From the sequence record OR142618.1: a stretch of DNA of 64,000 nucleotides; one strand, given 5' to 3'. The position numbers and the translations under genes are program-made. How positions within the stretch are numbered: position 1 is the first letter of the stretch; each line of letters begins with the position of its first letter. The notes below the pieces were generated by a model that was given only the letters and a program-made list of their open reading frames with translations, ran no database searches and was not told the origin of the DNA. This document shows, in pieces, positions 8,125 through 51,181 of this stretch.

Positions 8125-8354
8125 CATTATTAAGTCAAATGCAAATGCAAATACAAATTATTCTTATTTGCACAGATCAGACCATCCATTCCAATAACAT
8201 TACTAACTTGGATGAAATGGCTTACTACAATGAACTTTGAATACTAAAAAGTACCTAAGAAGTAATTCCAGTTGTATCTAAAACACTATGTGTTATTATA
8301 CATATAGTGTTTTTATTTCTTATAACTATATTCAATAATAATGGTAAAACATAT

Positions 8355-8678
8355 ATGATTGAAGTAATTAAATGCATTATATGTAATGAATCACCCCGTC
8401 CTGGTGCATTTGCAGCATTTATTACTCAAATGCGTCAAGTAGTAAAACCTCATGCAACTATAACTAGTTGGAATATTCTGCCCGGCATTAATGATGATCC
8501 AACTAGTTATATTCATGCATTCAGTATAAAATCAAAAACAGCATACAATATTAATCAAGCAGTTACCTTATTACTAATGTCATTATATAATGCTAGTGAA
8601 TATAAGACTAGCTACATACCTACTTCGTTTAAAGACTATGAATCTACAATAAAACATTTATCTAAGATCAAACAATAA
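8355..8678 (+). CDS. Hypothetical protein
   Basis: Likely ATG at 8355 (track start 8307); CxxC near the N-terminus. Confidence 0.65.
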   Translation: MIEVIKCIICNESPRPGAFAAFITQMRQVVKPHATITSWNILPGINDDPTSYIHAFSIKSKTAYNINQAVTLLLMSLYNASEYKTSYIPTSFKDYESTIKHLSKIKQ

Positions 8679-21947: not shown

Positions 21948-22079
21948 ATTAACCCCTTTTATTTAATAATTCTTTATTTGTTTTCAGATCTACAATTTTA
22001 ACGTGATCGAGGGCGTGACCGAGCACGTCCTCGTCTGGTTTTTTATTGTTACTGTTATCTTTCTTATTATCCATATCGA

Positions 22080-22087
22080 TATTTATC
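22080..22087 (-). promoter_or_regulatory. Putative late promoter GATAAATA
   Basis: T4 TATAAATA-like; recurs before structural genes. Confidence 0.6.
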
Positions 22088-22098
22088 TGTGTTTTAAA

Positions 22099-25000
22099 CT
22101 ACGGAGTTAATCCACTTCCAGGTCTGTTTTGTAAAAATATAGCCCAGGGAGTTGTACTTAGAGCAAGACCACCGTTATTATTTTCCCATATGTACTTACC
22201 TGTATCTTCTTGTTCTTGTTTATACGAACCGTCAAATACTCTAGTATATAAAGGCACAGTTGTATCTCCATTTGTTCCGGTATATACAGATGTCCCTAAT
22301 GATCCCCTAGTCAATCCGTGTAATTTATTACCGCGTTTATATAAGAATTCTATACGTTCGGTTCCTATCCAAACTACACCGGGTTTACTATTAGACGGAT
22401 CTACTATTGCAGATGCATCTACTAACTCTATAGATTTATCTGTAAGTTTTAATGGTTTAGCTAATCTAGTGCTATAATAATCAGAAATCCTAACATAGTG
22501 TGTTTCGCCCATTTCATCTAGGTGTACCCTGAAGCTTAGTGGTTTGGCAGGATATTTGATTACAACATTATCACCTTGCATTGTAACTGGATTTATGAAA
22601 TTGTGTTGTTCATTGAATACAGCTACCCACGAATTATTAACAATATCGGTTACTTTTTGAATGTTTGTTTCAGTCCAATCGATTCGTATAATATCGCCTG
22701 CGTTAAGAGTACCCTTATATACTACTAATAACTTAGCATTATCACCTGTTATATTTGTGAATTCTATAGTGTAGTCTTTGTCTTTAGTTTTACTAATTCC
22801 ATTTATATAAACTGTCTCTCCTACAAAATTACGTATACTAGTATCTACAGTGAAAAGTTTTGTATTTGTATACAATATTTCTTTACTCTTACGAGTATAT
22901 AAATTATTAGATACACTGATCATTCTTTTGTTAGCAGCAACAAACATGTCTAAAGTCTGCAACTTATATTCAGATGTAGTAACAGAAGTTATGTTATATT
23001 TGTTCATTACATACGAAACATAATCATCTAACTTCATTATAGAATAAGATTGATATTTAACTGTAATTACAGTTCCTGCACTCGGCGCAATTTCAAAATT
23101 AATAACAAGTTCAGGAGTAATTCCACTATTATCTACAACTACTGTATAGCCATACATTGCAACTCCGCTTGAATAAACACCCTGGACTCTGTTGGGGAGA
23201 ATATTCATACCTGTATGTATCATAGTATCTACACCATTTGCAGTAATATCTACAAACTTGTATGTAAGTTGTCCCGATGCCTGTGCGACTACTTCGTCAG
23301 GATTAGCAATAGTTGGCATATCTATAGGTAGTAGGTACACACTATCTGCATTTTCTGGAGAATCTATGCTTGGATCCCAAGCAAATGTATCCCATGTGTT
23401 TATATCTTTATTTTGTTTTGTATTTCTTAAATCTACAGTTATGTATCCTTGAGTATTATCCCTTACTACCGAATTAGTATCAAACCTATAATCGTTAGCT
23501 ACAGTAGTTTGTGAAGTATAATTATCTTTATAGACTACTGATATAATATCACCTGTACTGAAACTAGTAGGATATGCAATGACTACGGTATTAATGCCGT
23601 TGTTATCTATATTAAACTTCAATTTGTCTTCAGTATTAGGATCTCCGTTTATAACTAACCCTATTATATCCTGTAACACTATTTTTTCAGTTAATACTAT
23701 TTTAACAAACGGGTTCGAAGTATCTGTATTAGTAACAACATACTGAACTTCTGTAGTCTTCGCATTAGAATCTACAATAATAACCATGTTCTCTGTAGGA
23801 GATACTAATGCTTGTTCTTCTGGGATGCCTTCTCTTACGTCAGTATCTTCAAAATATGCACCATCTATTATAGGCTTACTAGTGTCACTGTTAAATGTAT
23901 TAGTAACAGGATTAAAAGTAAACACTATTTCGTCACCTTCTACTGCGCCAGGAACTTCTATAGATGTAAAATTAGAACCTTTTGTAGCAGTGTATTGTGT
24001 AGAAGATCCATTTAGTGTTACGCTAGTTATATCTACTACATATCGTATGACAAATGTTGTTTTTCCTTCCGATATGACTGTTGCACTTGTTTCGGTATAA
24101 TTAGGAGTAATAACATACGTAGCAGTAGAGGCATCCCATGCGTATTCGTCCCATTTTGTACTATCCCACGGTCTGCTAAATATGTACTCAAAATCTTTAG
24201 CATCTATGACCTTGCCTTCATAGTCACACCCGTATTCGTCGCCGAATCGTTCGTTAAATTGGAATAAAACATCTCTCTCGCCGGCTGAACTTTCGTATAG
24301 ACGTTCAGTAAACGAACTGTATGGATATGAACCGTTTATGGGTGCGGCACTTAAAATATCCCGTTGCAAGTCAGTTTGATATAATATATATCTTCCAGCA
24401 GCGCCAGAATATTGTAAGTATTCAGTCCATAATTGACGATTACCTTCTTGTATTGTGCCCGGTATACCCCAACGTAATTGACCCCACTTAGGTATACCCC
24501 AGCCGCCTGCGATTTTACCAGCTGGATCTATTGCTAAATCAAATATAGGTTTAAGCACTTTACCGGGTTGTCTAGCATTATATTCTAACCTCATTTCCTC
24601 TAACGGAGTTTGGGTGAATTCTGTACCAGAATATAATTTTATTTTAGATCCTATTTTAATAAGAGTATTTGATTTAAATGTTACTTGTAGATAACCATTC
24701 TCGTTTATTTCTACATCATATTGCTCTTTAGTAATAGTTTTTCCATCTACCTTAATTTTCCAAACAGATTTTATATCGGTGTAGTTTACTATTATTACAT
24801 CACCTGCATCAGGAGTAGAAGGAAGTATTATAAATGTTGCATTTAATATTGTAGTGAATGTGTAACCTTCTATTTCTTGCCCATTTATTGTTACAGATGT
24901 TATTCTAGAAATATCTTTATTAGCACCTAATTGATATTGAGAAATTCCATCTAATGCTATAAATTCATCATTAGGAGTATTTGCTATAAGAACTACTTGG

Positions 25001-44108: not shown

Positions 44109-45122
44109 GTGGGTAATTTATTTAAGAAAGTTGCATGTTTTAGTGATATTCACTTCGGATTGCATCATAACTCTAAAATTCACAATCAAGACTGTGAAGA
44201 TTTCATTAAGTGGTTTTGTAAAACTGCTAAAGAAAAAAATGCAGAAACATGTATATTTTTAGGCGATTGGCATCATACAAGAAACACCATTAATGTATCT
44301 ACACTAAACTACACCATGTCTAGTTTAGAACTACTAAACGATACGTTCGAAAAAGTATATTTTATCACTGGCAATCATGACCTTATGTATAGAGAAAAAA
44401 GAGAAGTACATTCTATTCCGATGGGTCACAAATATCCTAATATAGTTATGATAGAAGATCCGTTCGAACAAGGAGATGTATCTATTCTACCGTGGTTAGT
44501 AGGAGATGAATGGAAAGACGTTCCTAAAATAAAAGCAAAATATTTGTTTGGGCATTTAGAAATTCCAGGATTTAAACTAAATGCAATGGTAGAAATGCCC
44601 GATGTAGGAGAAATAAAATCCGAACATTTTGTTAATCAAACATATGTATTTTCTGGACATTTTCATAAGAGACAAGTAAATGGAAAAATTAATTATATCG
44701 GCAATCCATTTGGTCACAACTATTCTGATGTATGGGATTTTGATAGGGGTGCAATGTTTTTAGAATGGGGAGGGGAGCCTGAATATGTTAATTACGAAGA
44801 CGGACCTAGATTCATATCCACTACATTGAAACAAATACTAGAAAATCCAGATTATTATCTTAAGCCAAAAACTCACGTAAAAGCAACTATAGATGTAGAT
44901 ATAACATACGAAGAAGCCAATTTCTTACGTGAAACATTCTTGTCTTCATATAAAGTTAGAGAATTTAAATTATTACAGTCTAAATATAGCGAACACGAAA
45001 TAGAAAGTGATACTGAAACTGAATTCGAAACTGTAGATGAAATTGTTATTTCCGAACTAACTAATATTCAAAGTGATAACTTTGATAAAAACATACTTAT
45101 AAGCATTTACACAAACCTATAA
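44109..45122 (+). CDS. gp47: Recombination endonuclease subunit (Mre11/SbcD-like)
   Basis: SDIHFG, LGDWHH, GNHD, FGH, SGHFH metallophosphoesterase motifs. Confidence 0.92.
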   Translation: MGNLFKKVACFSDIHFGLHHNSKIHNQDCEDFIKWFCKTAKEKNAETCIFLGDWHHTRNTINVSTLNYTMSSLELLNDTFEKVYFITGNHDLMYREKREVHSIPMGHKYPNIVMIEDPFEQGDVSILPWLVGDEWKDVPKIKAKYLFGHLEIPGFKLNAMVEMPDVGEIKSEHFVNQTYVFSGHFHKRQVNGKINYIGNPFGHNYSDVWDFDRGAMFLEWGGEPEYVNYEDGPRFISTTLKQILENPDYYLKPKTHVKATIDVDITYEEANFLRETFLSSYKVREFKLLQSKYSEHEIESDTETEFETVDEIVISELTNIQSDNFDKNILISIYTNL

Positions 45123-46876
45123 TGTTAAAATTTAAATCTATATCAATGCGAAATTTTATGTCTGTCGGTAATAATACACAGACTATATTGCTAGACGAAA
45201 ACGATCTAACATTAGTTTTAGGAGAAAATTTAGATCTCGGTGGCAATGACAGTAAAAACGGAACCGGTAAGACTGCAAAATTAAATGCACTTTCATACGC
45301 ACTCTTTGGTACAGCATTAACTAATATAAGAAAAGAAAATCTAATTAATAAAACAAATGAAAAAAATATGTATGTTAAATTAGAATTTTCGTTGAATAAT
45401 AAAGAGTACAAAATAGAAAGGGGAAGAAAACCCAATATATTTAAAGTTATAATCAACAACAAAGAATTAGAAACAGACGAAACTGACGAAGCGCAAGGCG
45501 ACAGCAGACAAACACAACTTGCATTAGAAAAGGAATTAGGTTTTAGTCATAATATGTTTAAAAACATAATTGCACTAAACACTTATTCCACTCCTTTTCT
45601 CTCTATGAAAACTACCGAACAAAGAGAATTAATAGAACAACTGCTAGGCATAACTAAACTAAGTGAAAAAGCAGATATTCTAAAAAATTTAGTTAAAGAT
45701 ACTAAAGATAGAATTAAAGAAGAAGAATTTAGAATTAAAGCAATCCAAGAAGCAAATAAAAGCATAGAACAAAACATTGCTTCTATGGAACTTAGAAGCA
45801 AAGCCTGGGATAAAAGACATTTAGATACTTTACAAGAATACAGAGAATCGCTAGAGCATCTAAATAAAATAGATATAGATACTGAAATAGAAATGCATAA
45901 AGTTTTAAAAGAGATTTCTATTAAAGAAAGAGAAAAAAATGATATTTTAAAAGAATATAATATTGTAGAACGAGAAATACAGTCGTTATCTACAACAGTA
46001 TCTCACCTTTCGTCACAATTACTAAAAACTACAGAACACAACGAATGTCCTACATGCGGACAAGAATTAAATGATAGTCATACTTCATTAACTGAATCTT
46101 TAAAATTAAAGTTAGAATCTGCAACTAATTCACTTAAAGAAAAAGAAAATGAAAAAGAATTAATTTTAAATACATTAAATTCTATTTTTATACCGGAAAA
46201 ACCATCTACGTTTTATTCGTCTTTAGATGATGTTTATAATCATAAAACTATGATTAATACACTAGAGCATTCTATAGAAAAAGAAGAAATGCTAACTAAC
46301 CCTCACGTAGAAAATGTTTCTATTTTACGGGATAGTATAAAACAAGTGGATTTTGAAACTATTAATACGTTAGTTTCGCTGCGAGATCATCAAGAATTTT
46401 TATTAAAACTGCTAACCTCAAAAGATAGTTTTATAAGAAAAAAGATTATAGATCAAAATTTATCTTATCTAAATACAAGACTTGCACACTACTTAATAAA
46501 AATAGGATTGCCACACGAAGTAAAATTTATGTCTGACCTAGAAGTTCAGATTACAGAACACGGCAGAGAATTAGATTTTGATAATTTAAGTAGAGGTGAA
46601 CGCACCCGTTTAATTCTTTCACTAAGTTGGGCATTCAGGGATGTATTTGAAAGTCTTAACTATAAAATAAATCTGCTGTATATAGACGAATTAATAGACA
46701 ATGGATTAGATACCAGAGGTGTAGAATCTGCTCTAAGCATTCTAAAACAAATGTCAAGGGATTCTAGCAGAAAAGTATTTTTAGTGTCACACAGAGAAGA
46801 ATTAATTGGACGAGTTGATGTTCAACTAAAAGCAGTAAAAGAAGGTGGATTTACTTCTTATACAATCGAAGGATAA
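45122..46876 (+). CDS. gp46: Recombination endonuclease ATPase subunit (Rad50/SbcC-like)
   Basis: Walker A NGTGKT, CPTC zinc hook, LSRGE signature, YIDELID, LVSH. Confidence 0.92.
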   Translation: MLKFKSISMRNFMSVGNNTQTILLDENDLTLVLGENLDLGGNDSKNGTGKTAKLNALSYALFGTALTNIRKENLINKTNEKNMYVKLEFSLNNKEYKIERGRKPNIFKVIINNKELETDETDEAQGDSRQTQLALEKELGFSHNMFKNIIALNTYSTPFLSMKTTEQRELIEQLLGITKLSEKADILKNLVKDTKDRIKEEEFRIKAIQEANKSIEQNIASMELRSKAWDKRHLDTLQEYRESLEHLNKIDIDTEIEMHKVLKEISIKEREKNDILKEYNIVEREIQSLSTTVSHLSSQLLKTTEHNECPTCGQELNDSHTSLTESLKLKLESATNSLKEKENEKELILNTLNSIFIPEKPSTFYSSLDDVYNHKTMINTLEHSIEKEEMLTNPHVENVSILRDSIKQVDFETINTLVSLRDHQEFLLKLLTSKDSFIRKKIIDQNLSYLNTRLAHYLIKIGLPHEVKFMSDLEVQITEHGRELDFDNLSRGERTRLILSLSWAFRDVFESLNYKINLLYIDELIDNGLDTRGVESALSILKQMSRDSSRKVFLVSHREELIGRVDVQLKAVKEGGFTSYTIEG

Positions 46877-46877
46877 T

Positions 46878-46901
46878 AAAAAGAGGCTTAAGCCTCTTTT
46901 T
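46878..46901. terminator. Bidirectional terminator
   Basis: AAAAAGAGGCT-TA-AGCCTCTTTTT. Confidence 0.85.
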
Positions 46902-47637
46902 TATTAGTTTCTATTTTTGCTTTATCTAGTTGCTGTTTACTAATATATTTCGCATTAATTGTTATATTTTTGTTATCTCTTGCTTTAGTTAACCTATGAG
47001 CACCGTCTATTACATATAGTTTACCGTTGTCTTTATACACTATTATAGGGATGCTCACATCGGCAGCTTTTACTCTCGACGGCGCTAATTTGGTATATCG
47101 TAATATCCATGTTAAGTCTTTTATTTTAACACTTTCTACAGGAGCATGCTCTGTACTTCTAAAAATATCATCTAATCTATATTCATTACCATTATGCGTT
47201 AATGTACTATGTTTACCTTCTGTATAAGATTCAGAAATAGTATTAATGTTGTTGCCTATGTTAGATATTCTTGTTAAACTAGATTCAGTATCAGAAGCTA
47301 TTATGTCTCTACTATCTCCTGATCCTTTAAAATCGTAAACAATTATTCTTACTACATTAGGGAATATAGAAGATTTATTTACTTTAAGTCTTTTTATACG
47401 GTTACCCTGGGTGTCGTATAATGTTTCGTCAATTATATTAATATTAAAAGATTTTGCTAAATCCTTTGCAGTAATACCTACCTCTGCGGGTGATTCTCTA
47501 GAATATCTAGCCCTATTATCTATTACTAACTCGGTATTGTTGAAAAATGGATATTTATTCAATACATTGTTTAGTATTTTTTTAAATTTTGTATCTATAG
47601 GCTTAAACGGTAAAATCTCACCTTCTATAAATCTCAT
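46888..47637 (-). CDS. Protein with C-terminal ParB/Srx-like domain
   Basis: PIIVYKDNGKLYVIDGAHRL motif. Confidence 0.65.
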   Translation of the reverse strand: MRFIEGEILPFKPIDTKFKKILNNVLNKYPFFNNTELVIDNRARYSRESPAEVGITAKDLAKSFNINIIDETLYDTQGNRIKRLKVNKSSIFPNVVRIIVYDFKGSGDSRDIIASDTESSLTRISNIGNNINTISESYTEGKHSTLTHNGNEYRLDDIFRSTEHAPVESVKIKDLTWILRYTKLAPSRVKAADVSIPIIVYKDNGKLYVIDGAHRLTKARDNKNITINAKYISKQQLDKAKIETNKKEA

Positions 47638-47639
47638 TA

Positions 47640-48137
47640 TTATTTACTCAGCTGTTTTACTTTCTCTTTATTCTCTTCTGTCCAGAAATTATTCCAACTA
47701 CAGAATACCCAACCCTTGTAATCTATACTATTATTTACTTTAATACCGGTTTTTTCTTCAAATACTACCCATTTGCCTTGCCGAGTTATTTTTATAAAAA
47801 TAATATTAAAATCACCTTCGCTAGCAGTATCACGTACCTGTGATATCCATGTATCTAATTGTTTGCACTCTCCCTCGAACAACGAAGTAAATGAAAATTT
47901 TGCATACGATTTACATTCAGAATTAAAATGTTCCCATGTATCTGGAGGGAAAATATCACCTTTATAGGATTTGATTTGATTATTGCCTAGTGATGTTTTT
48001 CTGACAGAATTTTGTCCTCCTATAAAGGCACCTGAATGTGCTGTTCTAGTAAAGGGTTCGTTGTAAAATGAGGTAAGATCTTTTGCTACATCTCGTTCCC
48101 AGCTACTACCTTTAATTTTACTTTTCGATCCAGACAT
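47640..48137 (-). CDS. PD-(D/E)XK nuclease, Holliday-junction-resolvase-like
   Basis: SKIKGSSWERDVAK..GDI..ECKSY motifs. Confidence 0.75.
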   Translation of the reverse strand: MSGSKSKIKGSSWERDVAKDLTSFYNEPFTRTAHSGAFIGGQNSVRKTSLGNNQIKSYKGDIFPPDTWEHFNSECKSYAKFSFTSLFEGECKQLDTWISQVRDTASEGDFNIIFIKITRQGKWVVFEEKTGIKVNNSIDYKGWVFCSWNNFWTEENKEKVKQLSK

Positions 48138-48211
48138 GTTTTGTTAACCTTTTATATACCTGTTAAATTTTACATTATTTAGTTAATTTTATACCCATAT
48201 AATACTGTCGA

Positions 48212-48297
48212 GATAAATATGTGTGTAGATAACTTATAGCATTATTTTTAACGATTTTAGTACAATGGTTGACAGTATTAATATCGTATGCTATAAT
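48212..48297 (+). promoter_or_regulatory. Tandem late promoter (GATAAATA 48212-19) and consensus sigma70 promoter (TTGACA 48269-74, N17, TATAAT 48292-97)
   Basis: Exact consensus hexamers with 17-nt spacer; no ORF downstream. Confidence 0.85.
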
Positions 48298-48303
48298 CCG
48301 CAA

Positions 48304-49270
48304 CATAATAAAACTAAAGGACGTATGTAACAAAACAGACGTTCTCCTAAGTGTTTTAAAGTTTTTGCTTAGGAAGACCCAGTTGTATGTTTAAAGGGTG
48401 AACGGTAACGGGCATTCTTGTTTAAGACTAGTTCTTATGAAGACATTGGCAACTAACATAGCAGCTTTGTTCCATCATTGGATATTGGTAGTAGAAACTA
48501 TCCCCATCGTGCCTTTACTGTAGTACCGTTAGAGACGGAGATGACGCAGGAAAAAAGGTTATTTAAATTATGATTTTGGGTGCTGCAGAACACTTTCGTA
48601 AACAAAAGGAATATAGTTTACGTATACACAACGGGAACGGGAAAAAGCTTTTTAAGCAAAAACGAGTCCCTGGTAATTGGTGTTTAACGGGAGTGACGTC
48701 CCAAATGTTATTCATCGATTAACACTGTAAGAAGGTTGTAAGGGTTATTGTGTTCGAAGTGGTTTACACAACTGTTCTTCCTACATTTATGTACAGAAGT
48801 GTAAACGAAAGGATGTTGCTCTGGTAGAAAAAGATCAACGTACTTTATGACACTATCCTTGTGACATATGTACTTGTACCAACAACAGCCGCAGGTTACG
48901 GATATGGTATTACAAACTGTACTGCGGTTCCGGGAGTTGAAAGTGGATGTTAGCTTAGGTGGCTGTTTGCTTAATTATAATGTTTAATTTAGGCAATATA
49001 AGCGTCGGGTGAGGCTTTCGTAGGTTGCGTGTTTATGCTACGGTGTAAATGGGCTAGACTACTGGCGCATACATGAGTATTGTAGGATTGGCGCTTTAAT
49101 AAAGAAATTTGTTAAAGTTTGAGTTTAGCTCCCCGCTCATTAGCAATAAACGTTGCTAGTCGATAGTATACCCACGCCTAAATAATGCCGTCATTGTTTA
49201 GTTTTTTTAAAAAATATAATTGTCAATTATATGTCGTACGCATCTACCCCGAAAAGGGGTAGATGTTTAT
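48304..49270 (+). ncRNA. Candidate large (~900-nt) highly structured non-coding RNA
   Basis: Perfect promoter, no ORF of 60 aa or more, 5'/3' end pairing (48310-26 with 49185-205), many nested stems with G-U pairs on the plus strand, terminator-like hairpin. Confidence 0.7.
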
Positions 49271-49498
49271 GACTTTCGTTTACACTCATGTCATAATCAG
49301 TACACGCCATTTTAGGCCATTCTACATCAATACACTGCTTCTAGCAGTGTATTGGACATACAAAATGATCTTAAATTATATCAAATTTGTTTAATTACTT
49401 TAATTTTGTTACTTTAGTAATTTGTATTTTGTTTATATGAGTTGTAGTTTACGAAAACGAATATAAACAAAATACATATGTGAACTGTAGTTCACATA
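49214..49498. repeat. Cluster of perfect inverted repeats
   Basis: 49214-32 (9 bp), 49328-54 (12 bp), 49424-75 (15 bp), 49477-98 (10 bp). Confidence 0.85.
49241..49270 (+). terminator. Terminator-like hairpin
   Basis: CATCTACCCC-GAAAA-GGGGTAGATG then TTTAT (short T tract). Confidence 0.65.
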
Positions 49499-49650
49499 CT
49501 TACTAACGTTGTATATTACGGTAATTCTATAAAATATCTCTATATAATTATAAACGTTTTATGGCATACTACGACTGAACGAAATTGAAAATTAACTAGA
49601 GATTTAATTAGATAAATAATATTGTAAAAATTGTATAGAGGTATACATCA

Positions 49651-50103
49651 ATGAACGATTACACACATTACACAGAGGAAGATTTCATATTTTTAGCATA
49701 TGATTTAAATACTCAGCTTATAAATGATGGATATCCTGACGCTGCTGTAAAATTTATTACTAATCAGTTTATTTTAGAGCATAGACATCCTGACGAAATA
49801 AAACGTTGTATAGGATGTAATTCTAAAATGTACGAAGATGTTATTGCTACTAAGAGAAATTTATCTGGTAAATCGCATTGCAGACATTGCGAATCGAAAC
49901 TTAGTATGTATAAGGAAGTTGTTAAAGAAGTAGCAAATACAACACAAATACTTCGCATACCAGAAAAACATTTAAATTCAGTTAAACGATTAATTAGAAT
50001 ATATAATGAGCAAAACAAAACTAGTGCATATCAGAGTATATTAGTTAAAACAAAGAAACTTAACACAGGAGTTTCTAAAAAGTCAAAAAGAAAGGGACGT
50101 TAA
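49651..50103 (+). CDS. Hypothetical protein with CxxC..CxxC zinc ribbon and basic tail
   Basis: CIGC..CRHC; GAGG RBS; GATAAATA at 49611-18. Confidence 0.8.
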   Translation: MNDYTHYTEEDFIFLAYDLNTQLINDGYPDAAVKFITNQFILEHRHPDEIKRCIGCNSKMYEDVIATKRNLSGKSHCRHCESKLSMYKEVVKEVANTTQILRIPEKHLNSVKRLIRIYNEQNKTSAYQSILVKTKKLNTGVSKKSKRKGR

Positions 50104-50119: not shown

Positions 50120-50339
50120 ATAGGAAGCTTCTACCTGTTTCTGCTTCGATTTTTTGTTTAATAAATTCTCCTAAACGTACCCGCTCTTGATATGATAAAG
50201 ACCAAGCAGTGTGCCAGTCAAATCCATTAATTTTATCACATATTTGGACTATTTCGCCTTCTAATCCCAGTGATTCTTGTTCATATTCTTGTATAACGTT
50301 CCTAATATCATCTGGGGTTCCCGATACTAGGATTCTCTG
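50118..50339 (-). CDS. 73-codon -1-frame extension of 50327..51181 (gp51/GT-like), no start codon of its own
   Basis: Open frame QRILVSG..DWHTAWSLSYQER..SFL*; in-frame TAA just upstream of the slippery heptamer. Confidence 0.75.
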   Translation of the reverse strand, partial: QRILVSGTPDDIRNVIQEYEQESLGLEGEIVQICDKINGFDWHTAWSLSYQERVRLGEFIKQKIEAETGRSFL

Positions 50340-51181
50340 AAAAAACTTACTGGGTTAAAATCTACAGGTACTACAAAACTTTTATTACAGTTGTCGCATA
50401 CTGCATCAAAGTCGCCATTAACTCCTACTTGATTTATTTCTTTTAAAAGACTATCTATTTTATTAACATCTGCTCTATCTATATTTGCTATAAATTCTTT
50501 TATATCAGCTAGTGTCTGAGCAGTATTGTTAACTATGTCTATACCGTTAGTTTCATCTACAATACGAACTATTGTTTTTGCAATTAATTCAAAATTTAAT
50601 GATGACAGTTCATTTATTGTATTAGAAAAGGCAGAAAGTTTTTCTTCATCTGAATACATATCGCTTTGCATTATTCTAATAAATTTTGCTTGTTCTAATG
50701 CAGTTTTTGCAACTGTCATATTATCTGAAAAATCATATGGTCTAATAAATATAGATAGACCGTTATCAAGGTTTACGACGTATTGATCTTCTAAATAAGT
50801 GGACGTATTAATAACATTTAATAAGTCTATTCCATATAAATTTTTATGATTGCAATGCGGGCACGTAGAAGAAATATCTATTGTGTTACCGTATGATGCT
50901 GCTTTTATAGCAACACATATCATATGAATGTCATTAATCAAGAGTTTATTTACATCTTTAATTCCCGGTACACAACTCTTAATTACTTCTTTTAAGCCTT
51001 CACCGTTCACTAATGCATCAGGATTTTTTATTAATACTTCATCTTTTCCTGTCATAGCATATACCCCTAGTTCTCCGGAATCGGTGTATTCTACAACATT
51101 TGATGGATAAAATGAATTTCCGCTGGGCAAACGAATATAAGATTTGAATGTTCTGTAATATTGATGTAATTTGTTGCTCAT
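50327..51181 (-). CDS. Baseplate-hub/tail assembly chaperone (T4 gp26-like)
   Basis: YRTFKSYIRLPSG.FY..VYAMTGKDE..NPDALVNG..CPHC..C..C; next to the tape-measure-like gene. Confidence 0.75.
   Translation of the reverse strand: MSNKLHQYYRTFKSYIRLPSGNSFYPSNVVEYTDSGELGVYAMTGKDEVLIKNPDALVNGEGLKEVIKSCVPGIKDVNKLLINDIHMICVAIKAASYGNTIDISSTCPHCNHKNLYGIDLLNVINTSTYLEDQYVVNLDNGLSIFIRPYDFSDNMTVAKTALEQAKFIRIMQSDMYSDEEKLSAFSNTINELSSLNFELIAKTIVRIVDETNGIDIVNNTAQTLADIKEFIANIDRADVNKIDSLLKEINQVGVNGDFDAVCDNCNKSFVVPVDFNPVSFFRES

Follow-up and report, generated by a model that had tools for sequence, protein, structure and literature searches.

To our knowledge, very few large structured noncoding RNAs (ncRNAs) of bacteria and phages have been described, namely OLE, GOLLD, ROOL, HEARO and raiA; we know of no large phage ncRNA with an established function, and the majority belong to systems that are uncultured or difficult to manipulate. 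The φ29 pRNA, about 120–174 nt in length, has a defined two-domain fold, and ColE1 RNA II is a transcript of ~550 nt, the folding of which matters for its function. Multimeric assembly into a homo-oligomeric cage or ring is a feature of GOLLD and ROOL (10.1101/2024.12.08.627333). Four transcribed regions without ORFs, ncRNA001–004, were detected by RNA-seq in Pseudomonas phage PA5oct at positions 8263–8498, 21951–22401, 103065–103368 and 246116–246734 (PMC7318152).

The window analysed here is a stretch of 64 000 nucleotides from record OR142618.1. It represents the terminal part of a PA5oct-like Pseudomonas jumbo phage, and phage Callisto is 100% identical. Positions ~48304–49266 on the plus strand are very probably the gene for a highly structured ncRNA of ~960 nt, the PA5oct-lineage member of an undescribed phage RNA family with lengths of ~570–1000 nt. 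Folding, conservation with covariation and the lack of an Rfam match all support the proposal of a preliminary description that a large structured phage RNA of undescribed class is expressed here from its own plus-strand promoter. In PA5oct coordinates the locus lies at about 75.83–76.80 kb; it belongs to the same phage lineage as ncRNA001–004 but has other coordinates, is not among the four and is annotated as tiny CDSs.

Rfam 15 was searched at gathering score (GOLLD RF01998, ROOL RF03087, OLE, HEARO, raiA and all other families), a check suggested in the preliminary description, and gave no match in the window, nor in 16 further loci (homologous or syntenic) and two from cultured phages. 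At E < 10, five weak matches were obtained in 48100–49700, all of which are noise; the best, nqrA-II, reached 23 bits, whereas its gathering score is 55. ARAGORN found neither a tRNA nor a tmRNA in the 64 kb window, and the genes flanking the RNA are complete and unsplit. These results and the Rfam search agree with the earlier statement that no hallmark of tmRNA, RNase P or group I/II introns was seen. No description of the RNA was found in the literature.

Like GOLLD and ROOL, the RNA is a large (0.6–1 kb), multi-domain and heavily paired phage ncRNA, in which conserved junctions alternate with variable hairpins and which has its own promoter. Unlike these classes, it is matched by neither of their covariance models, even at E < 10, and no tRNA gene is present in the 64 kb window, whereas GOLLD and ROOL are often, if not strictly, tRNA-adjacent. 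Another difference is the distribution of the family, whose members occupy a fixed syntenic slot in T4-like jumbo phages infecting Gram-negative hosts and in environmental relatives. It shares with φ29 pRNA that it is a phage-encoded structured RNA, and the portal gene (PA5oct gp149) is ~4 kb from the RNA gene; φ29 pRNA is absent from the five weak Rfam matches, and we know of no RNA requirement for T4-like terminases.

Diverged homologues were identified in at least eight other lineages of uncultured phages, the loci of which are numbered here with the prefix L. The closest relative, L119, was matched by the window in nhmmer with E = 2 × 10−24, and covariance-model matches were obtained in L119, L122, L124, L133, L167, the L152 group, the L005/L051/L218 group, L222 and L157. 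The common order of the slot is SbcCD, PDDEXK nuclease, RNA and gp26-like baseplate hub, which was confirmed in the window, L119, L133, L152, L157 and L167. SegE-type homing endonuclease genes adjoin the homologous RNA in L157 and L187, which makes the locus a target for mobile DNA. Among cultured phages, sequence searching returned 11 genomes, all near-identical and PA5oct-like. The core model gave no significant match in Salicola phage SCTP-2 or Sinorhizobium phage Phosso, the nearest other cultured relatives by PDDEXK protein; the same slot in Phosso holds an unannotated gap of 1 kb that abuts an RNase HI gene.

Same-slot ORF-free gaps in L003/L006/L007/L044 and in L145/L147/L150 gave no match to the RNA in nhmmer or blastn. 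With filters off, covariance model R2 scored only 9–10 bits in the gaps of both groups, at the expected place and on the expected strand in L003, L007 and L150. Besides the RNA itself, at least two unmatched, structured ORF-free inserts occupy the slot in other clades, and in these jumbo phages the junction between SbcCD/PDDEXK and the baseplate hub seems to be a conserved site for ncRNA. A motif scan with TATTGNTAGTAGAAACTANCC yielded one true member, L133; L126–L132 and L134, from the same scan, were discarded as a chance coding family. Scanning with AAGGATGTTGCTCTGGT gave nothing related, and the single match in a motif scan of genome contigs, in a Firmicutes MAG, was due to chance.

Every ORF between 48138 and 49650 is 52 aa or shorter, which bears out the ORF-free interval of ~1.5 kb reported previously. 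The G+C content is 0.38–0.42 in 48350–49250, compared with 0.27–0.33 in the flanks, and G exceeds C within the same segment. Several GenBank records (PA5oct gp142–145, Ettore, Cassandra, Paride and PAC2) place four to six hypothetical CDSs of 31–52 aa in the region, and small PA5oct CDSs were added by the authors from RNA-seq coverage (PMC7318152). On this basis the locus could be read as a cluster of tiny-protein genes and the RNA as an ordinary polycistronic mRNA, a reading that is highly improbable given that near-identical genomes from other annotators have no CDS called here and that the annotated mini-ORFs overlap one another and occupy both strands. A Pfam search of ten small ORFs at the locus gave no match, and protein similarity was detected in none of the frames. 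When the small ORFs were compared with the homologues L119, L122 and L133 using tblastn, the reading frames were not conserved except for 21 codons, which coincide with a nucleotide block that is 84% identical between the window and L119; the alignment of these two sequences contains a 49 nt indel and further non-triplet indels.

Variation within the lineage points in the same direction, as its pattern across the RNA is not codon-like and all substitutions at paired sites preserve pairing (G·U to A–U twice and C–G to U·G once). In eight PA5oct-like phages the RNA is approximately threefold less variable than the flanking genes, with 8 variable sites in 967 nt versus 2.6 per 100 nt outside (P = 7 × 10−5), and the segment 48717–49200 has 0 variable sites in 484 nt (P = 3 × 10−6). 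At the nucleotide level, the RNA region is more strongly constrained than the adjoining genes.

The RNA is built from a covarying core and conserved blocks, spaced by hairpins that are fixed in position and not in sequence. The three-helix core (48471–48590, plus strand) was delineated using covariance models R1 and R2 and covariation. It consists of helix P_A (48487–48502, loop AGAA), helix P_L (CCCA 48503–48506 with UGGG 48577–48580) and the variable hairpin P_V (48512–48558), and its joining strands UAUUG, CCCCAUUG and AUGAUYUUGGGUG..GCAG are conserved. The window contains this family-defining arrangement, with P_A abutting the CCCCAUUG strand, the variable hairpin and AUGAUCUUGGGUG closing P_L, at 83–85 bits (R1, R2). 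The window, L119 and L122 score 83–98 bits with the two models, and seven more lineages score 21–75 bits. Both sides have changed in 14 of the 17 core pairs in a model-fitted alignment, with 94% of cells paired, and none of 500 shuffles matches this. The pairwise alifold energy of the window and L119 is −90; shuffling the columns gives −47 ± 6, and the reverse complement gives −66. Sequence and structure conservation with compensatory changes in relatives, which the preliminary description had asked for, was thus found. At the position after the core every lineage has a hairpin, with unrelated sequences; in the window this is CGUAAAC/GUUUACG, immediately 3′ of the core (48597–48622, plus strand; pair probability 0.92), a stem that had been recognized earlier.

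A second set of family features is also present in the window: block C (GAU...GCUCUG...GAAA.AGA, 48812–48834), a terminal CCCC/GGGG hairpin and an upstream σ70 promoter. Block C as a whole (AAAGGAUGUUGCUCUGGUAGAAAAAGAUCAAC, 48807–48845, plus strand) contains the pattern GATNNNGCTCTGNNNGAAANAGA, which is common to eight loci (the window, L119, L122, L133, L167, L152, L157 and L187) and always lies 3′ of the core where a core exists; L218 has a variant. Scanning with the block C pattern recovered L152, L157, L167 and L187 among ~45 chance matches. Block D (48878–48934, plus strand), defined by comparison with L119, has the helix GCCGCAG/CUGCGGU (48888–48894 with 48922–48928) and a conserved loop inside; over 57 nt it shares 84% identity with L119, where AUCUG/CAGAU takes the place of CGCAG/CUGCG, three of the pairs being compensatory. 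Block E (AAAUGGGCUAGACUACUGGCGC, 49047–49068, plus strand) was compared by hand among the window, L119, L122, L133, L157, L167 and L187; it is related to UAAUGGGAAGAUGGUG..CGCC elsewhere, and its stem covaries as GGG/CCC, GAGG/CCUC and GUGG/CCAC. The block F hairpin UAGCAA-UAAACG-UUGCUA (49139–49160, plus strand; probability 0.91) corresponds to CUGCAA-UAGACG-UUGCAG in L119; the loop is conserved and two pairs are compensatory. Support for the 3′ half of the RNA comes mostly from the comparison of the window with L119 and from manual block matching. In lineage-wide analysis with MAFFT and RNAalifold the sequences were alignable only at the anchor blocks, and the intervening hairpins were unalignable.

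Folding of the window RNA itself was compared with dinucleotide-shuffled controls, as had been suggested: the plus strand folds better than the shuffles (z = −3.5) and the minus strand does not (z = −1.1). The single-sequence minimum free-energy (MFE) structure is at odds with the comparative core structure. At the 5′ end (48318–48375, plus strand) there are two hairpins, GGACGU/ACGUUC (48319–48344) and UCCUAAG/CUUAGGA (48345–48374), which covary in L119, where different complementary sequences (ACGCCGG/UUGGCGU and GGUAGG/CCUAC) occupy the same positions. Polymorphism G48320A replaces a G·U pair by A–U. The second hairpin had been proposed before; it is complementary and has a covarying equivalent in L119, but its single-sequence probability is low. 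The 5′ and 3′ ends had been thought to enclose the whole RNA by two pairings. One of these, GACGTAT with ATGCCGTC, has a probability of 0, GGACGU instead pairing locally with ACGUUC. The other gives a possible closing helix, AAAACTAAA/TTTAGTTTT (48310–48317 with 49198–49205, plus strand), with eight of the nine proposed pairs present in the MFE structure at a mean pair probability of 0.5; conservation of this helix in L119 was not found.

Several of the remaining stems of the preliminary description were recovered. The hairpin GUUUACAC/GUGUAAAC, which precedes block C (48762–48806, plus strand) and had been given as GTTTACAC/GTGTAAAC, has a pair probability of 0.91 and several compensatory pairs relative to L119. 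GCAG/CTGC was recovered within GCCGCAG/CTGCGGT (probability 0.88), the GAAA-capped stem as a hairpin of 10–11 bp at 49093–49118 (plus strand; pair probability 0.98) and TAGCAA/TTGCTA as the block F hairpin. AACAGCC/GGCTGTT (probability 0, no counterpart in L119) and GCGTCGGGTG/TACCCACGC (probability 0.09) were dropped, so that together with the GACGTAT pairing three long-range stems are unsupported.

The GC-rich hairpin CAUCUACCCC-GAAAA-GGGGUAGAUG (49240–49266, plus strand; 10–11 bp, pair probability 1.0), followed by UUUAU, agrees with the 10 bp hairpin previously placed at the close of the RNA and is probably its 3′ end or stabilizer. The RNAs of L119, L122, L133 and L157 end in a similar CCCC-loop-GGGG hairpin without a long U tract. 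In the proposed mechanism this terminal hairpin would set or shield the 3′ end.

The predicted start at ~48304 derives from a σ70-type promoter, TTGACA-17-TGcTATAAT (48269–48297, plus strand), which matches the consensus at 12 of 12 positions, has an extended TG and is the only such match in the 2 kb region scanned (47900–49900). The perfect promoter noted previously as pointing into the RNA is therefore present. Near-consensus σ70 promoters occur in six lineages: those of L119, L122, L133 and L157 have at most one mismatch and lie 100–220 nt upstream of the core, and in L187, where no core was found, a promoter is directly upstream of its RNA. PA5oct depends on host RNA polymerase (PMC7318152), which would transcribe the RNA from the start of infection. 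A late promoter had also been proposed. Its motif, GATAAATA, is present at 48212–48219 (plus strand) and recurs in L119 at the same distance, ~56 nt, upstream of the −35 box, but as a motif alone it leaves the promoter role unsupported: GATAAATA shows no enrichment across the window (9 occurrences, 9.2 expected), and the T4-type TATAAATA has 3 occurrences, with 17 expected.

The z-scores, the G>C skew, the G·U pairs in covarying helices and the orientation of the promoter agree, and the plus strand is thus taken to be functional. The same observations bear on whether the locus acts as DNA, either as a packaging or recombination site or as a decayed foreign gene with incidental structure. A G+C content above that of the surroundings and the SegE-type genes beside the RNA would fit such an element. 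It has hardly any probability in view of double substitutions that compensate each other in 14 or more pairs between lineages, strand-asymmetric folding and G·U use, the conserved promoter and the absence of protein similarity in all frames. The functional product would be the folded RNA itself, neither peptide nor DNA.

Downstream of the RNA, a gene of 150 aa (49651–50103) has the same orientation and also has low diversity (4 variable sites in 453 nt), as might be expected if the RNA regulated this gene as a very long leader or in the manner of a riboswitch; an antisense regulator of neighbouring genes was considered together with it. Such a cis-acting role is very unlikely. No homologue of the 150 aa product was detectable in IMG/VR, and the RNA persists in L119, L133, L005 and L157, where other, often convergent, genes replace the 150 aa gene. 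The next genes are convergent in L133 and L005, and the RNA is therefore not a cis leader. In the window, the strong terminal hairpin ends the RNA 385 nt before the 150 aa gene, and the RNA overlaps none of the neighbouring genes.

Between the RNA and this gene lies an AT-rich spacer (49271–49650, no strand assigned; G+C 0.24–0.27), outside the conserved RNA, with inverted repeats at 49420–49498 and a minus-strand terminator-like hairpin. Like ColE1 RNA II and T4 ori(uvsY), the locus has a promoter-driven ncRNA near AT-rich DNA and replication or recombination genes. The RNA might accordingly be a replication-origin transcript that forms an R-loop or primer in the manner of these systems, with 49271–49650 unwinding. 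The strong promoter, the structured RNA and the ensuing 380 bp of 24–27% G+C with inverted repeats would suit an origin, as would the adjoining nuclease genes (SbcCD and PDDEXK), the location of the T4 uvsY origin next to genes 25/26 and the RNase HI gene beside the same-slot gap of Phosso. An origin is nevertheless unlikely here. Unlike in ColE1 RNA II and T4 ori(uvsY), the AT-rich DNA is not co-conserved with the RNA: a partial counterpart is present in L122 and L133, and it is missing from L119 and from L005- and L003-type loci, where convergent genes follow the RNA directly. The spacer evolves at the neutral rate (8 variable sites in 380 nt), whereas the body of the RNA is constrained, and the stable terminal hairpin stands between the two and ends the RNA first. 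We know of no R-loop origin that requires ~1 kb of covarying structure.

For the ncRNA, we tentatively suggest, by analogy with other ornate phage RNAs, that it may be a stable, trans-acting RNA with an architectural role (a component of a ribonucleoprotein, a scaffold or a decoy) and not a cis-regulator or replication primer. The cage or scaffold, packaging and replication-priming roles put forward in the preliminary description are conjectural. Somewhat more doubtful is that the RNA of PA5oct, with Pseudomonas aeruginosa PAO1 as host, is the founding member of a new class of ~1 kb ornate RNAs that T4-like jumbo phages have long kept at a single locus, and that it has its own biochemical role. 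If this were true, the RNA might be a ribozyme, form an RNA-only assembly or serve as the core of a ribonucleoprotein for replication, morphogenesis or counter-defence, with no counterpart among characterized phage RNAs. At least six deposited genomes carry four to six hypothetical mini-proteins in place of this RNA, an annotation that the present assignment corrects. As a member of the family resides in a cultured, sequenced therapy-candidate phage with RNA-seq data and a standard host, its deletion, timing, localization, partners and three-dimensional structure are directly testable.

The stretch at 48138-49650, between a PDDEXK_15 nuclease gene and a 150-aa ORFan, carries a real, conserved, large structured RNA gene (about 48304-49266, plus strand) that was previously unannotated. 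The window is the final 64 kb of the Callisto record. A 1.5 kb query (48140-49650) matches eleven records of Pseudomonas aeruginosa PA5oct-group jumbo phages (Wroclawvirus, Arenbergviridae) at 99.1-100% identity, with 100% in Callisto and Ettore; the PA5oct counterpart lies at about 75.67-77.18 kb. Neighbouring genes were identified by PHROG and Pfam matches. On the upstream side these are SbcD-like and SbcC-like nuclease subunits (44109-46876, +), a 249-aa virion protein (46888-47637, -) and the 165-aa PDDEXK_15 'resolvase-like' nuclease (47640-48137, -). The ORFan (49651-50103, +) is followed by a T4 gp26-like baseplate hub protein (50327-51181, -) and a 798-aa virion protein (+), after which the portal gene is next in order in PA5oct.

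The longest ORF in 48138-49650 is at most 52 aa, in agreement with the preliminary description of this stretch as ORF-free. The G+C fraction is 0.38-0.42 within 48350-49250, with G exceeding C, compared with 0.27-0.33 on both sides. Four to six overlapping 'hypothetical proteins' of 31-52 aa on both strands (window 48175-49394) are annotated over the RNA in some GenBank records (PA5oct EST35_0142-0145 and equivalents in Ettore, Cassandra, Deifobo, Paride and PAC2), and are missing from further records of near-identical genomes, which annotate nothing there; they are probably misannotated. Pfam gave no match to ten small ORFs over the region. Peptides were excluded as the product, the homologues having no conserved reading frames. 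Searches with Rfam 15 gave no match at gathering score in the whole window and only noise at E < 10 in 48100-49700, and the 64 kb contain no tRNA or tmRNA gene. The PA5oct omics study lists four ncRNAs, all elsewhere in the genome (PMC7318152).

The early promoter proposed in the preliminary description is TTGACA-17-TATAAT with an extended TG (48269-48297), the sole perfect match in a 2 kb scan (47900-49900), and the closing 3' hairpin is perfect at 49240-49266. The plus strand of 48296-49270 folds at -273.6 kcal/mol, compared with -243.8 +/- 8.5 kcal/mol for dinucleotide shuffles (z = -3.5; reverse strand z = -1.1). Six of the stems proposed earlier are present in the MFE structure with high pair probability, but GACGTAT/ATGCCGTC, AACAGCC/GGCTGTT and GCGTCGGGTG/TACCCACGC are unsupported in the fold of the window RNA. 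The MFE includes the enclosing helix AAAACUAA/UUAGUUUU at a probability of 0.5; TCCTAAG/CTTAGGA pairs with low probability when the window RNA is folded singly but covaries in the closest relative. The supposed late promoter GATAAATA exists as a motif, but its frequency in the window is not above chance (9 versus 9.2 expected). Occurrences of the T4 late consensus TATAAATA in the whole window are far fewer than base composition predicts (three versus ~17), and late promoters of PA5oct-type phages probably differ from it in motif.

Diverged homologues were found using nhmmer, motif patterns and a covariance model, and they display the conservation and covariation on which the earlier proposal depended. 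Relatives recovered from IMG/VR and JGI metagenomes with the PDDEXK neighbour as query showed no RNA sequence similarity at their loci; a protein search of a large collection yielded nearer PDDEXK relatives (70%, 64% and 53% identity). Using nhmmer, the window gap was aligned over ~760 nt (E = 2e-24) with L119, L120 and L121 (L numbers denote loci of other, mostly uncultured phages), and in blocks with L122 and L123. L119, the closest relative, has the gene order of the window, and its alignment retains the -35/-10 promoter at equal spacing, conserved sequence blocks and hairpins in which both strands have changed together. A 21-nt motif of the most conserved block retrieved L133 in IMG/VR, and a degenerate pattern of the second block retrieved L152 with four sister contigs (115-310 kb), L157, L167 and L187. 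One core motif searched in GTDB species-representative genomes gave a single, unrelated chance match. Wherever the flanking DNA of a lineage is long enough, the RNA occupies the interval from the SbcCD/PDDEXK genes to the gp26-like hub gene, with varying orientation and intervening small genes. The RNA is unlikely to be a cis-leader of the downstream gene, because that gene lacks conservation and often runs convergently. In L157 (3822-4299, -) and L187 (881-1396, -), SegE-type GIY-YIG homing endonuclease genes are immediate, divergently oriented neighbours of the RNA gene; in L157 the perfect promoter of the RNA lies within the coding sequence of the endonuclease, on its other strand.

From five lineages a covariance model was built for the three-helix core (48471-48590), followed by a second iteration. 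The core comprises hairpin P_A with an AGAA loop, the strand CCCCAUUG directly after it, the variable hairpin P_V and the strand AUGAUCUUGGGUG, which closes the long-range helix P_L (CCCA with UGGG). Scores were 83-85 bits for the window, 88-98 for L119, 85-94 for L122, 75-86 for L133, 72-74 for L167, 46-68 for L124, 49 for the L005/L051/L052/L218 group, 45 for the L152 group, 38 for L222 and a low 21 for L157, the membership of which is corroborated by conserved blocks C and E, the terminal hairpin and a perfect promoter. Complementarity is retained despite differing sequences: P_A is GGUAGU/ACUAUC in the window and GUUAGU/ACUAAC, GGUGU/ACACC, AGUAA/UUACU, GGUUGG/CCAACC or GUUGAGC/GCUCAAC in others, and P_L is CCCA/UGGG in the window and CACG/CGUG, CGCA/UGCG or CCUC/GAGG in other lineages. 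Standard pairs fill 94.4% of cells in a ten-sequence alignment (72.3% shuffled), 14 of 17 pairs are changed on both sides, none of 500 shuffles matches any observed measure, and a shift of the 3' partner by 1-3 columns leaves pairing at 28-44% and lowers the covariation score from 0.58 to ~0.04; the pairing and covariation figures are somewhat inflated, as this alignment was fitted to the model. The same compensatory changes appear in plain MAFFT alignments.

Outside the core, RNAalifold gave -90.3 kcal/mol for the window/L119 alignment (column shuffles -47.4 +/- 5.9, reverse complement -65.9), with 38 compensatory pairs compared with 24.9 +/- 5.1 in shuffles. Block C (48807-48845) is found in nine lineages, in L218 as a variant; the block D helix (48888-48928) has three compensatory pairs relative to L119; the stem of block E (near 49047-49068) covaries among L133, L157, L167 and L187; and in L119 the hairpin at 49139-49160 retains its loop and shows two compensatory pairs. 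The window, L119, L122, L133 and L157 share a terminal CCCC-loop-GGGG hairpin that lacks a U tract. Between these anchors each lineage has hairpins at equivalent positions that are unrelated in sequence and length, and global alignment therefore failed. The estimated size from promoter to terminal hairpin is ~960 nt in the window, ~800 in L119, ~1000 in L122, ~750 in L133, ~840 in L157 and ~570 in L187, where no core was found. Upstream of the core, at a distance of 100-220 nt, the window, L119, L122, L133 and L157 each have a near-consensus sigma-70 promoter (12 positions, no more than one mismatch); in L187 such a promoter lies just upstream of the RNA. Since PA5oct also relies on host RNA polymerase (PMC7318152), we infer that the RNA is transcribed early, possibly continuously.

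A 9.5 kb alignment of the locus and its surroundings was made from eight PA5oct-like phages. Apart from the ORFan (0.9), the flanking genes have 2.2-4.9 variable sites per 100 nt and the spacers 48138-48303 and 49271-49650 have 2.1-2.4, compared with eight sites in the 967 nt of 48304-49270 (Poisson P = 7e-5) and none in the 484 nt of 48717-49200 (P = 3e-6). All substitutions at confidently paired positions preserve pairing (G48320.U48343 to A-U, G48543.U48560 to A-U, C48716-G48679 to U.G); the remainder fall in predicted loops. The RNA body is therefore under more nucleotide-level constraint than protein-coding DNA, and the adjacent spacers are not. A role as replication origin or primer RNA is suggested by the AT-rich spacer and the neighbourhood, but this spacer is neither conserved alongside the RNA nor constrained. 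Among the genes, that of the 249-aa virion protein is unusually variable (4.9 sites per 100 nt) and the ORFan unusually invariant (P = 0.009). The 49271-49650 spacer (24-27% G+C) contains a 60-nt imperfect inverted repeat (49420-49479/49498) and a terminator-like hairpin (49476-49499) on the minus strand, whereas the next gene is on the plus strand. It partly resembles the spacer after the RNA in L122, and hairpins at its position in several relatives carry C(UUCG)G read on the minus strand.

In two further groups of related phages the slot of the RNA gene is occupied by different inserts, likewise ORF-free and well-folding, which may be divergent members of one superfamily. In freshwater-type jumbo-phage contigs related to PA5oct, a non-coding element of ~500 nt with ~75% identity occupies the PDDEXK-hub interval (L003:6556-7065 (+), L006:5675-6215, L007/L044:6530-7045). 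Across just four sequences, compensatory changes affect 22 of the 122 predicted pairs; by eye, the element shows a hairpin-CUCC-UUGA-hairpin-GGAUCUGGAG order comparable to that of the core, and the core model scores only 9 bits, though at the expected place. This second structured RNA may be a distant homologue of the window RNA. The gaps in three hub-gene relatives (L145:4688-5257, L147:7110-7819, L150:6595-7996; minus strand of the loci, 570-1400 nt) are mutually alignable and share the motif GGAUACCCUUGGUCUGACUCCUCCG, with no detectable similarity to the window RNA. The cultured 469 kb Sinorhizobium phage Phosso (PV764938.1), with the gene order of the window, has an unannotated 1 kb gap between its RNase HI and PDDEXK 'resolvase' genes (L202:6954-7967), in which the core model found nothing significant. 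A conserved 58-aa minus-strand ORF (..ALKFSWYMRGGVSYEDVLNMS..NLETTKK..PFF; L003:7054-7230 (-) and equivalents in L006, L007 and L044) immediately follows the hub gene in many relatives, with further nhmmer matches in L052, L009, L053, L046 and L005. In L150 (1-2392) the T4-type portal gene contains an intein (Pfam Intein_splicing within Portal_T4).

With a cis-leader unlikely, the spacer evidence against an origin and peptides excluded, we tentatively favour a stable trans-acting architectural RNA (an RNP, scaffold or decoy). GOLLD and ROOL, of which the structures but not the functions are known (10.1101/2024.12.08.627333), share this broad kind, but the window RNA belongs to neither. Among the large ornate phage RNAs, a known kind, it forms a new family, and its role is directly testable in PA5oct on PAO1.
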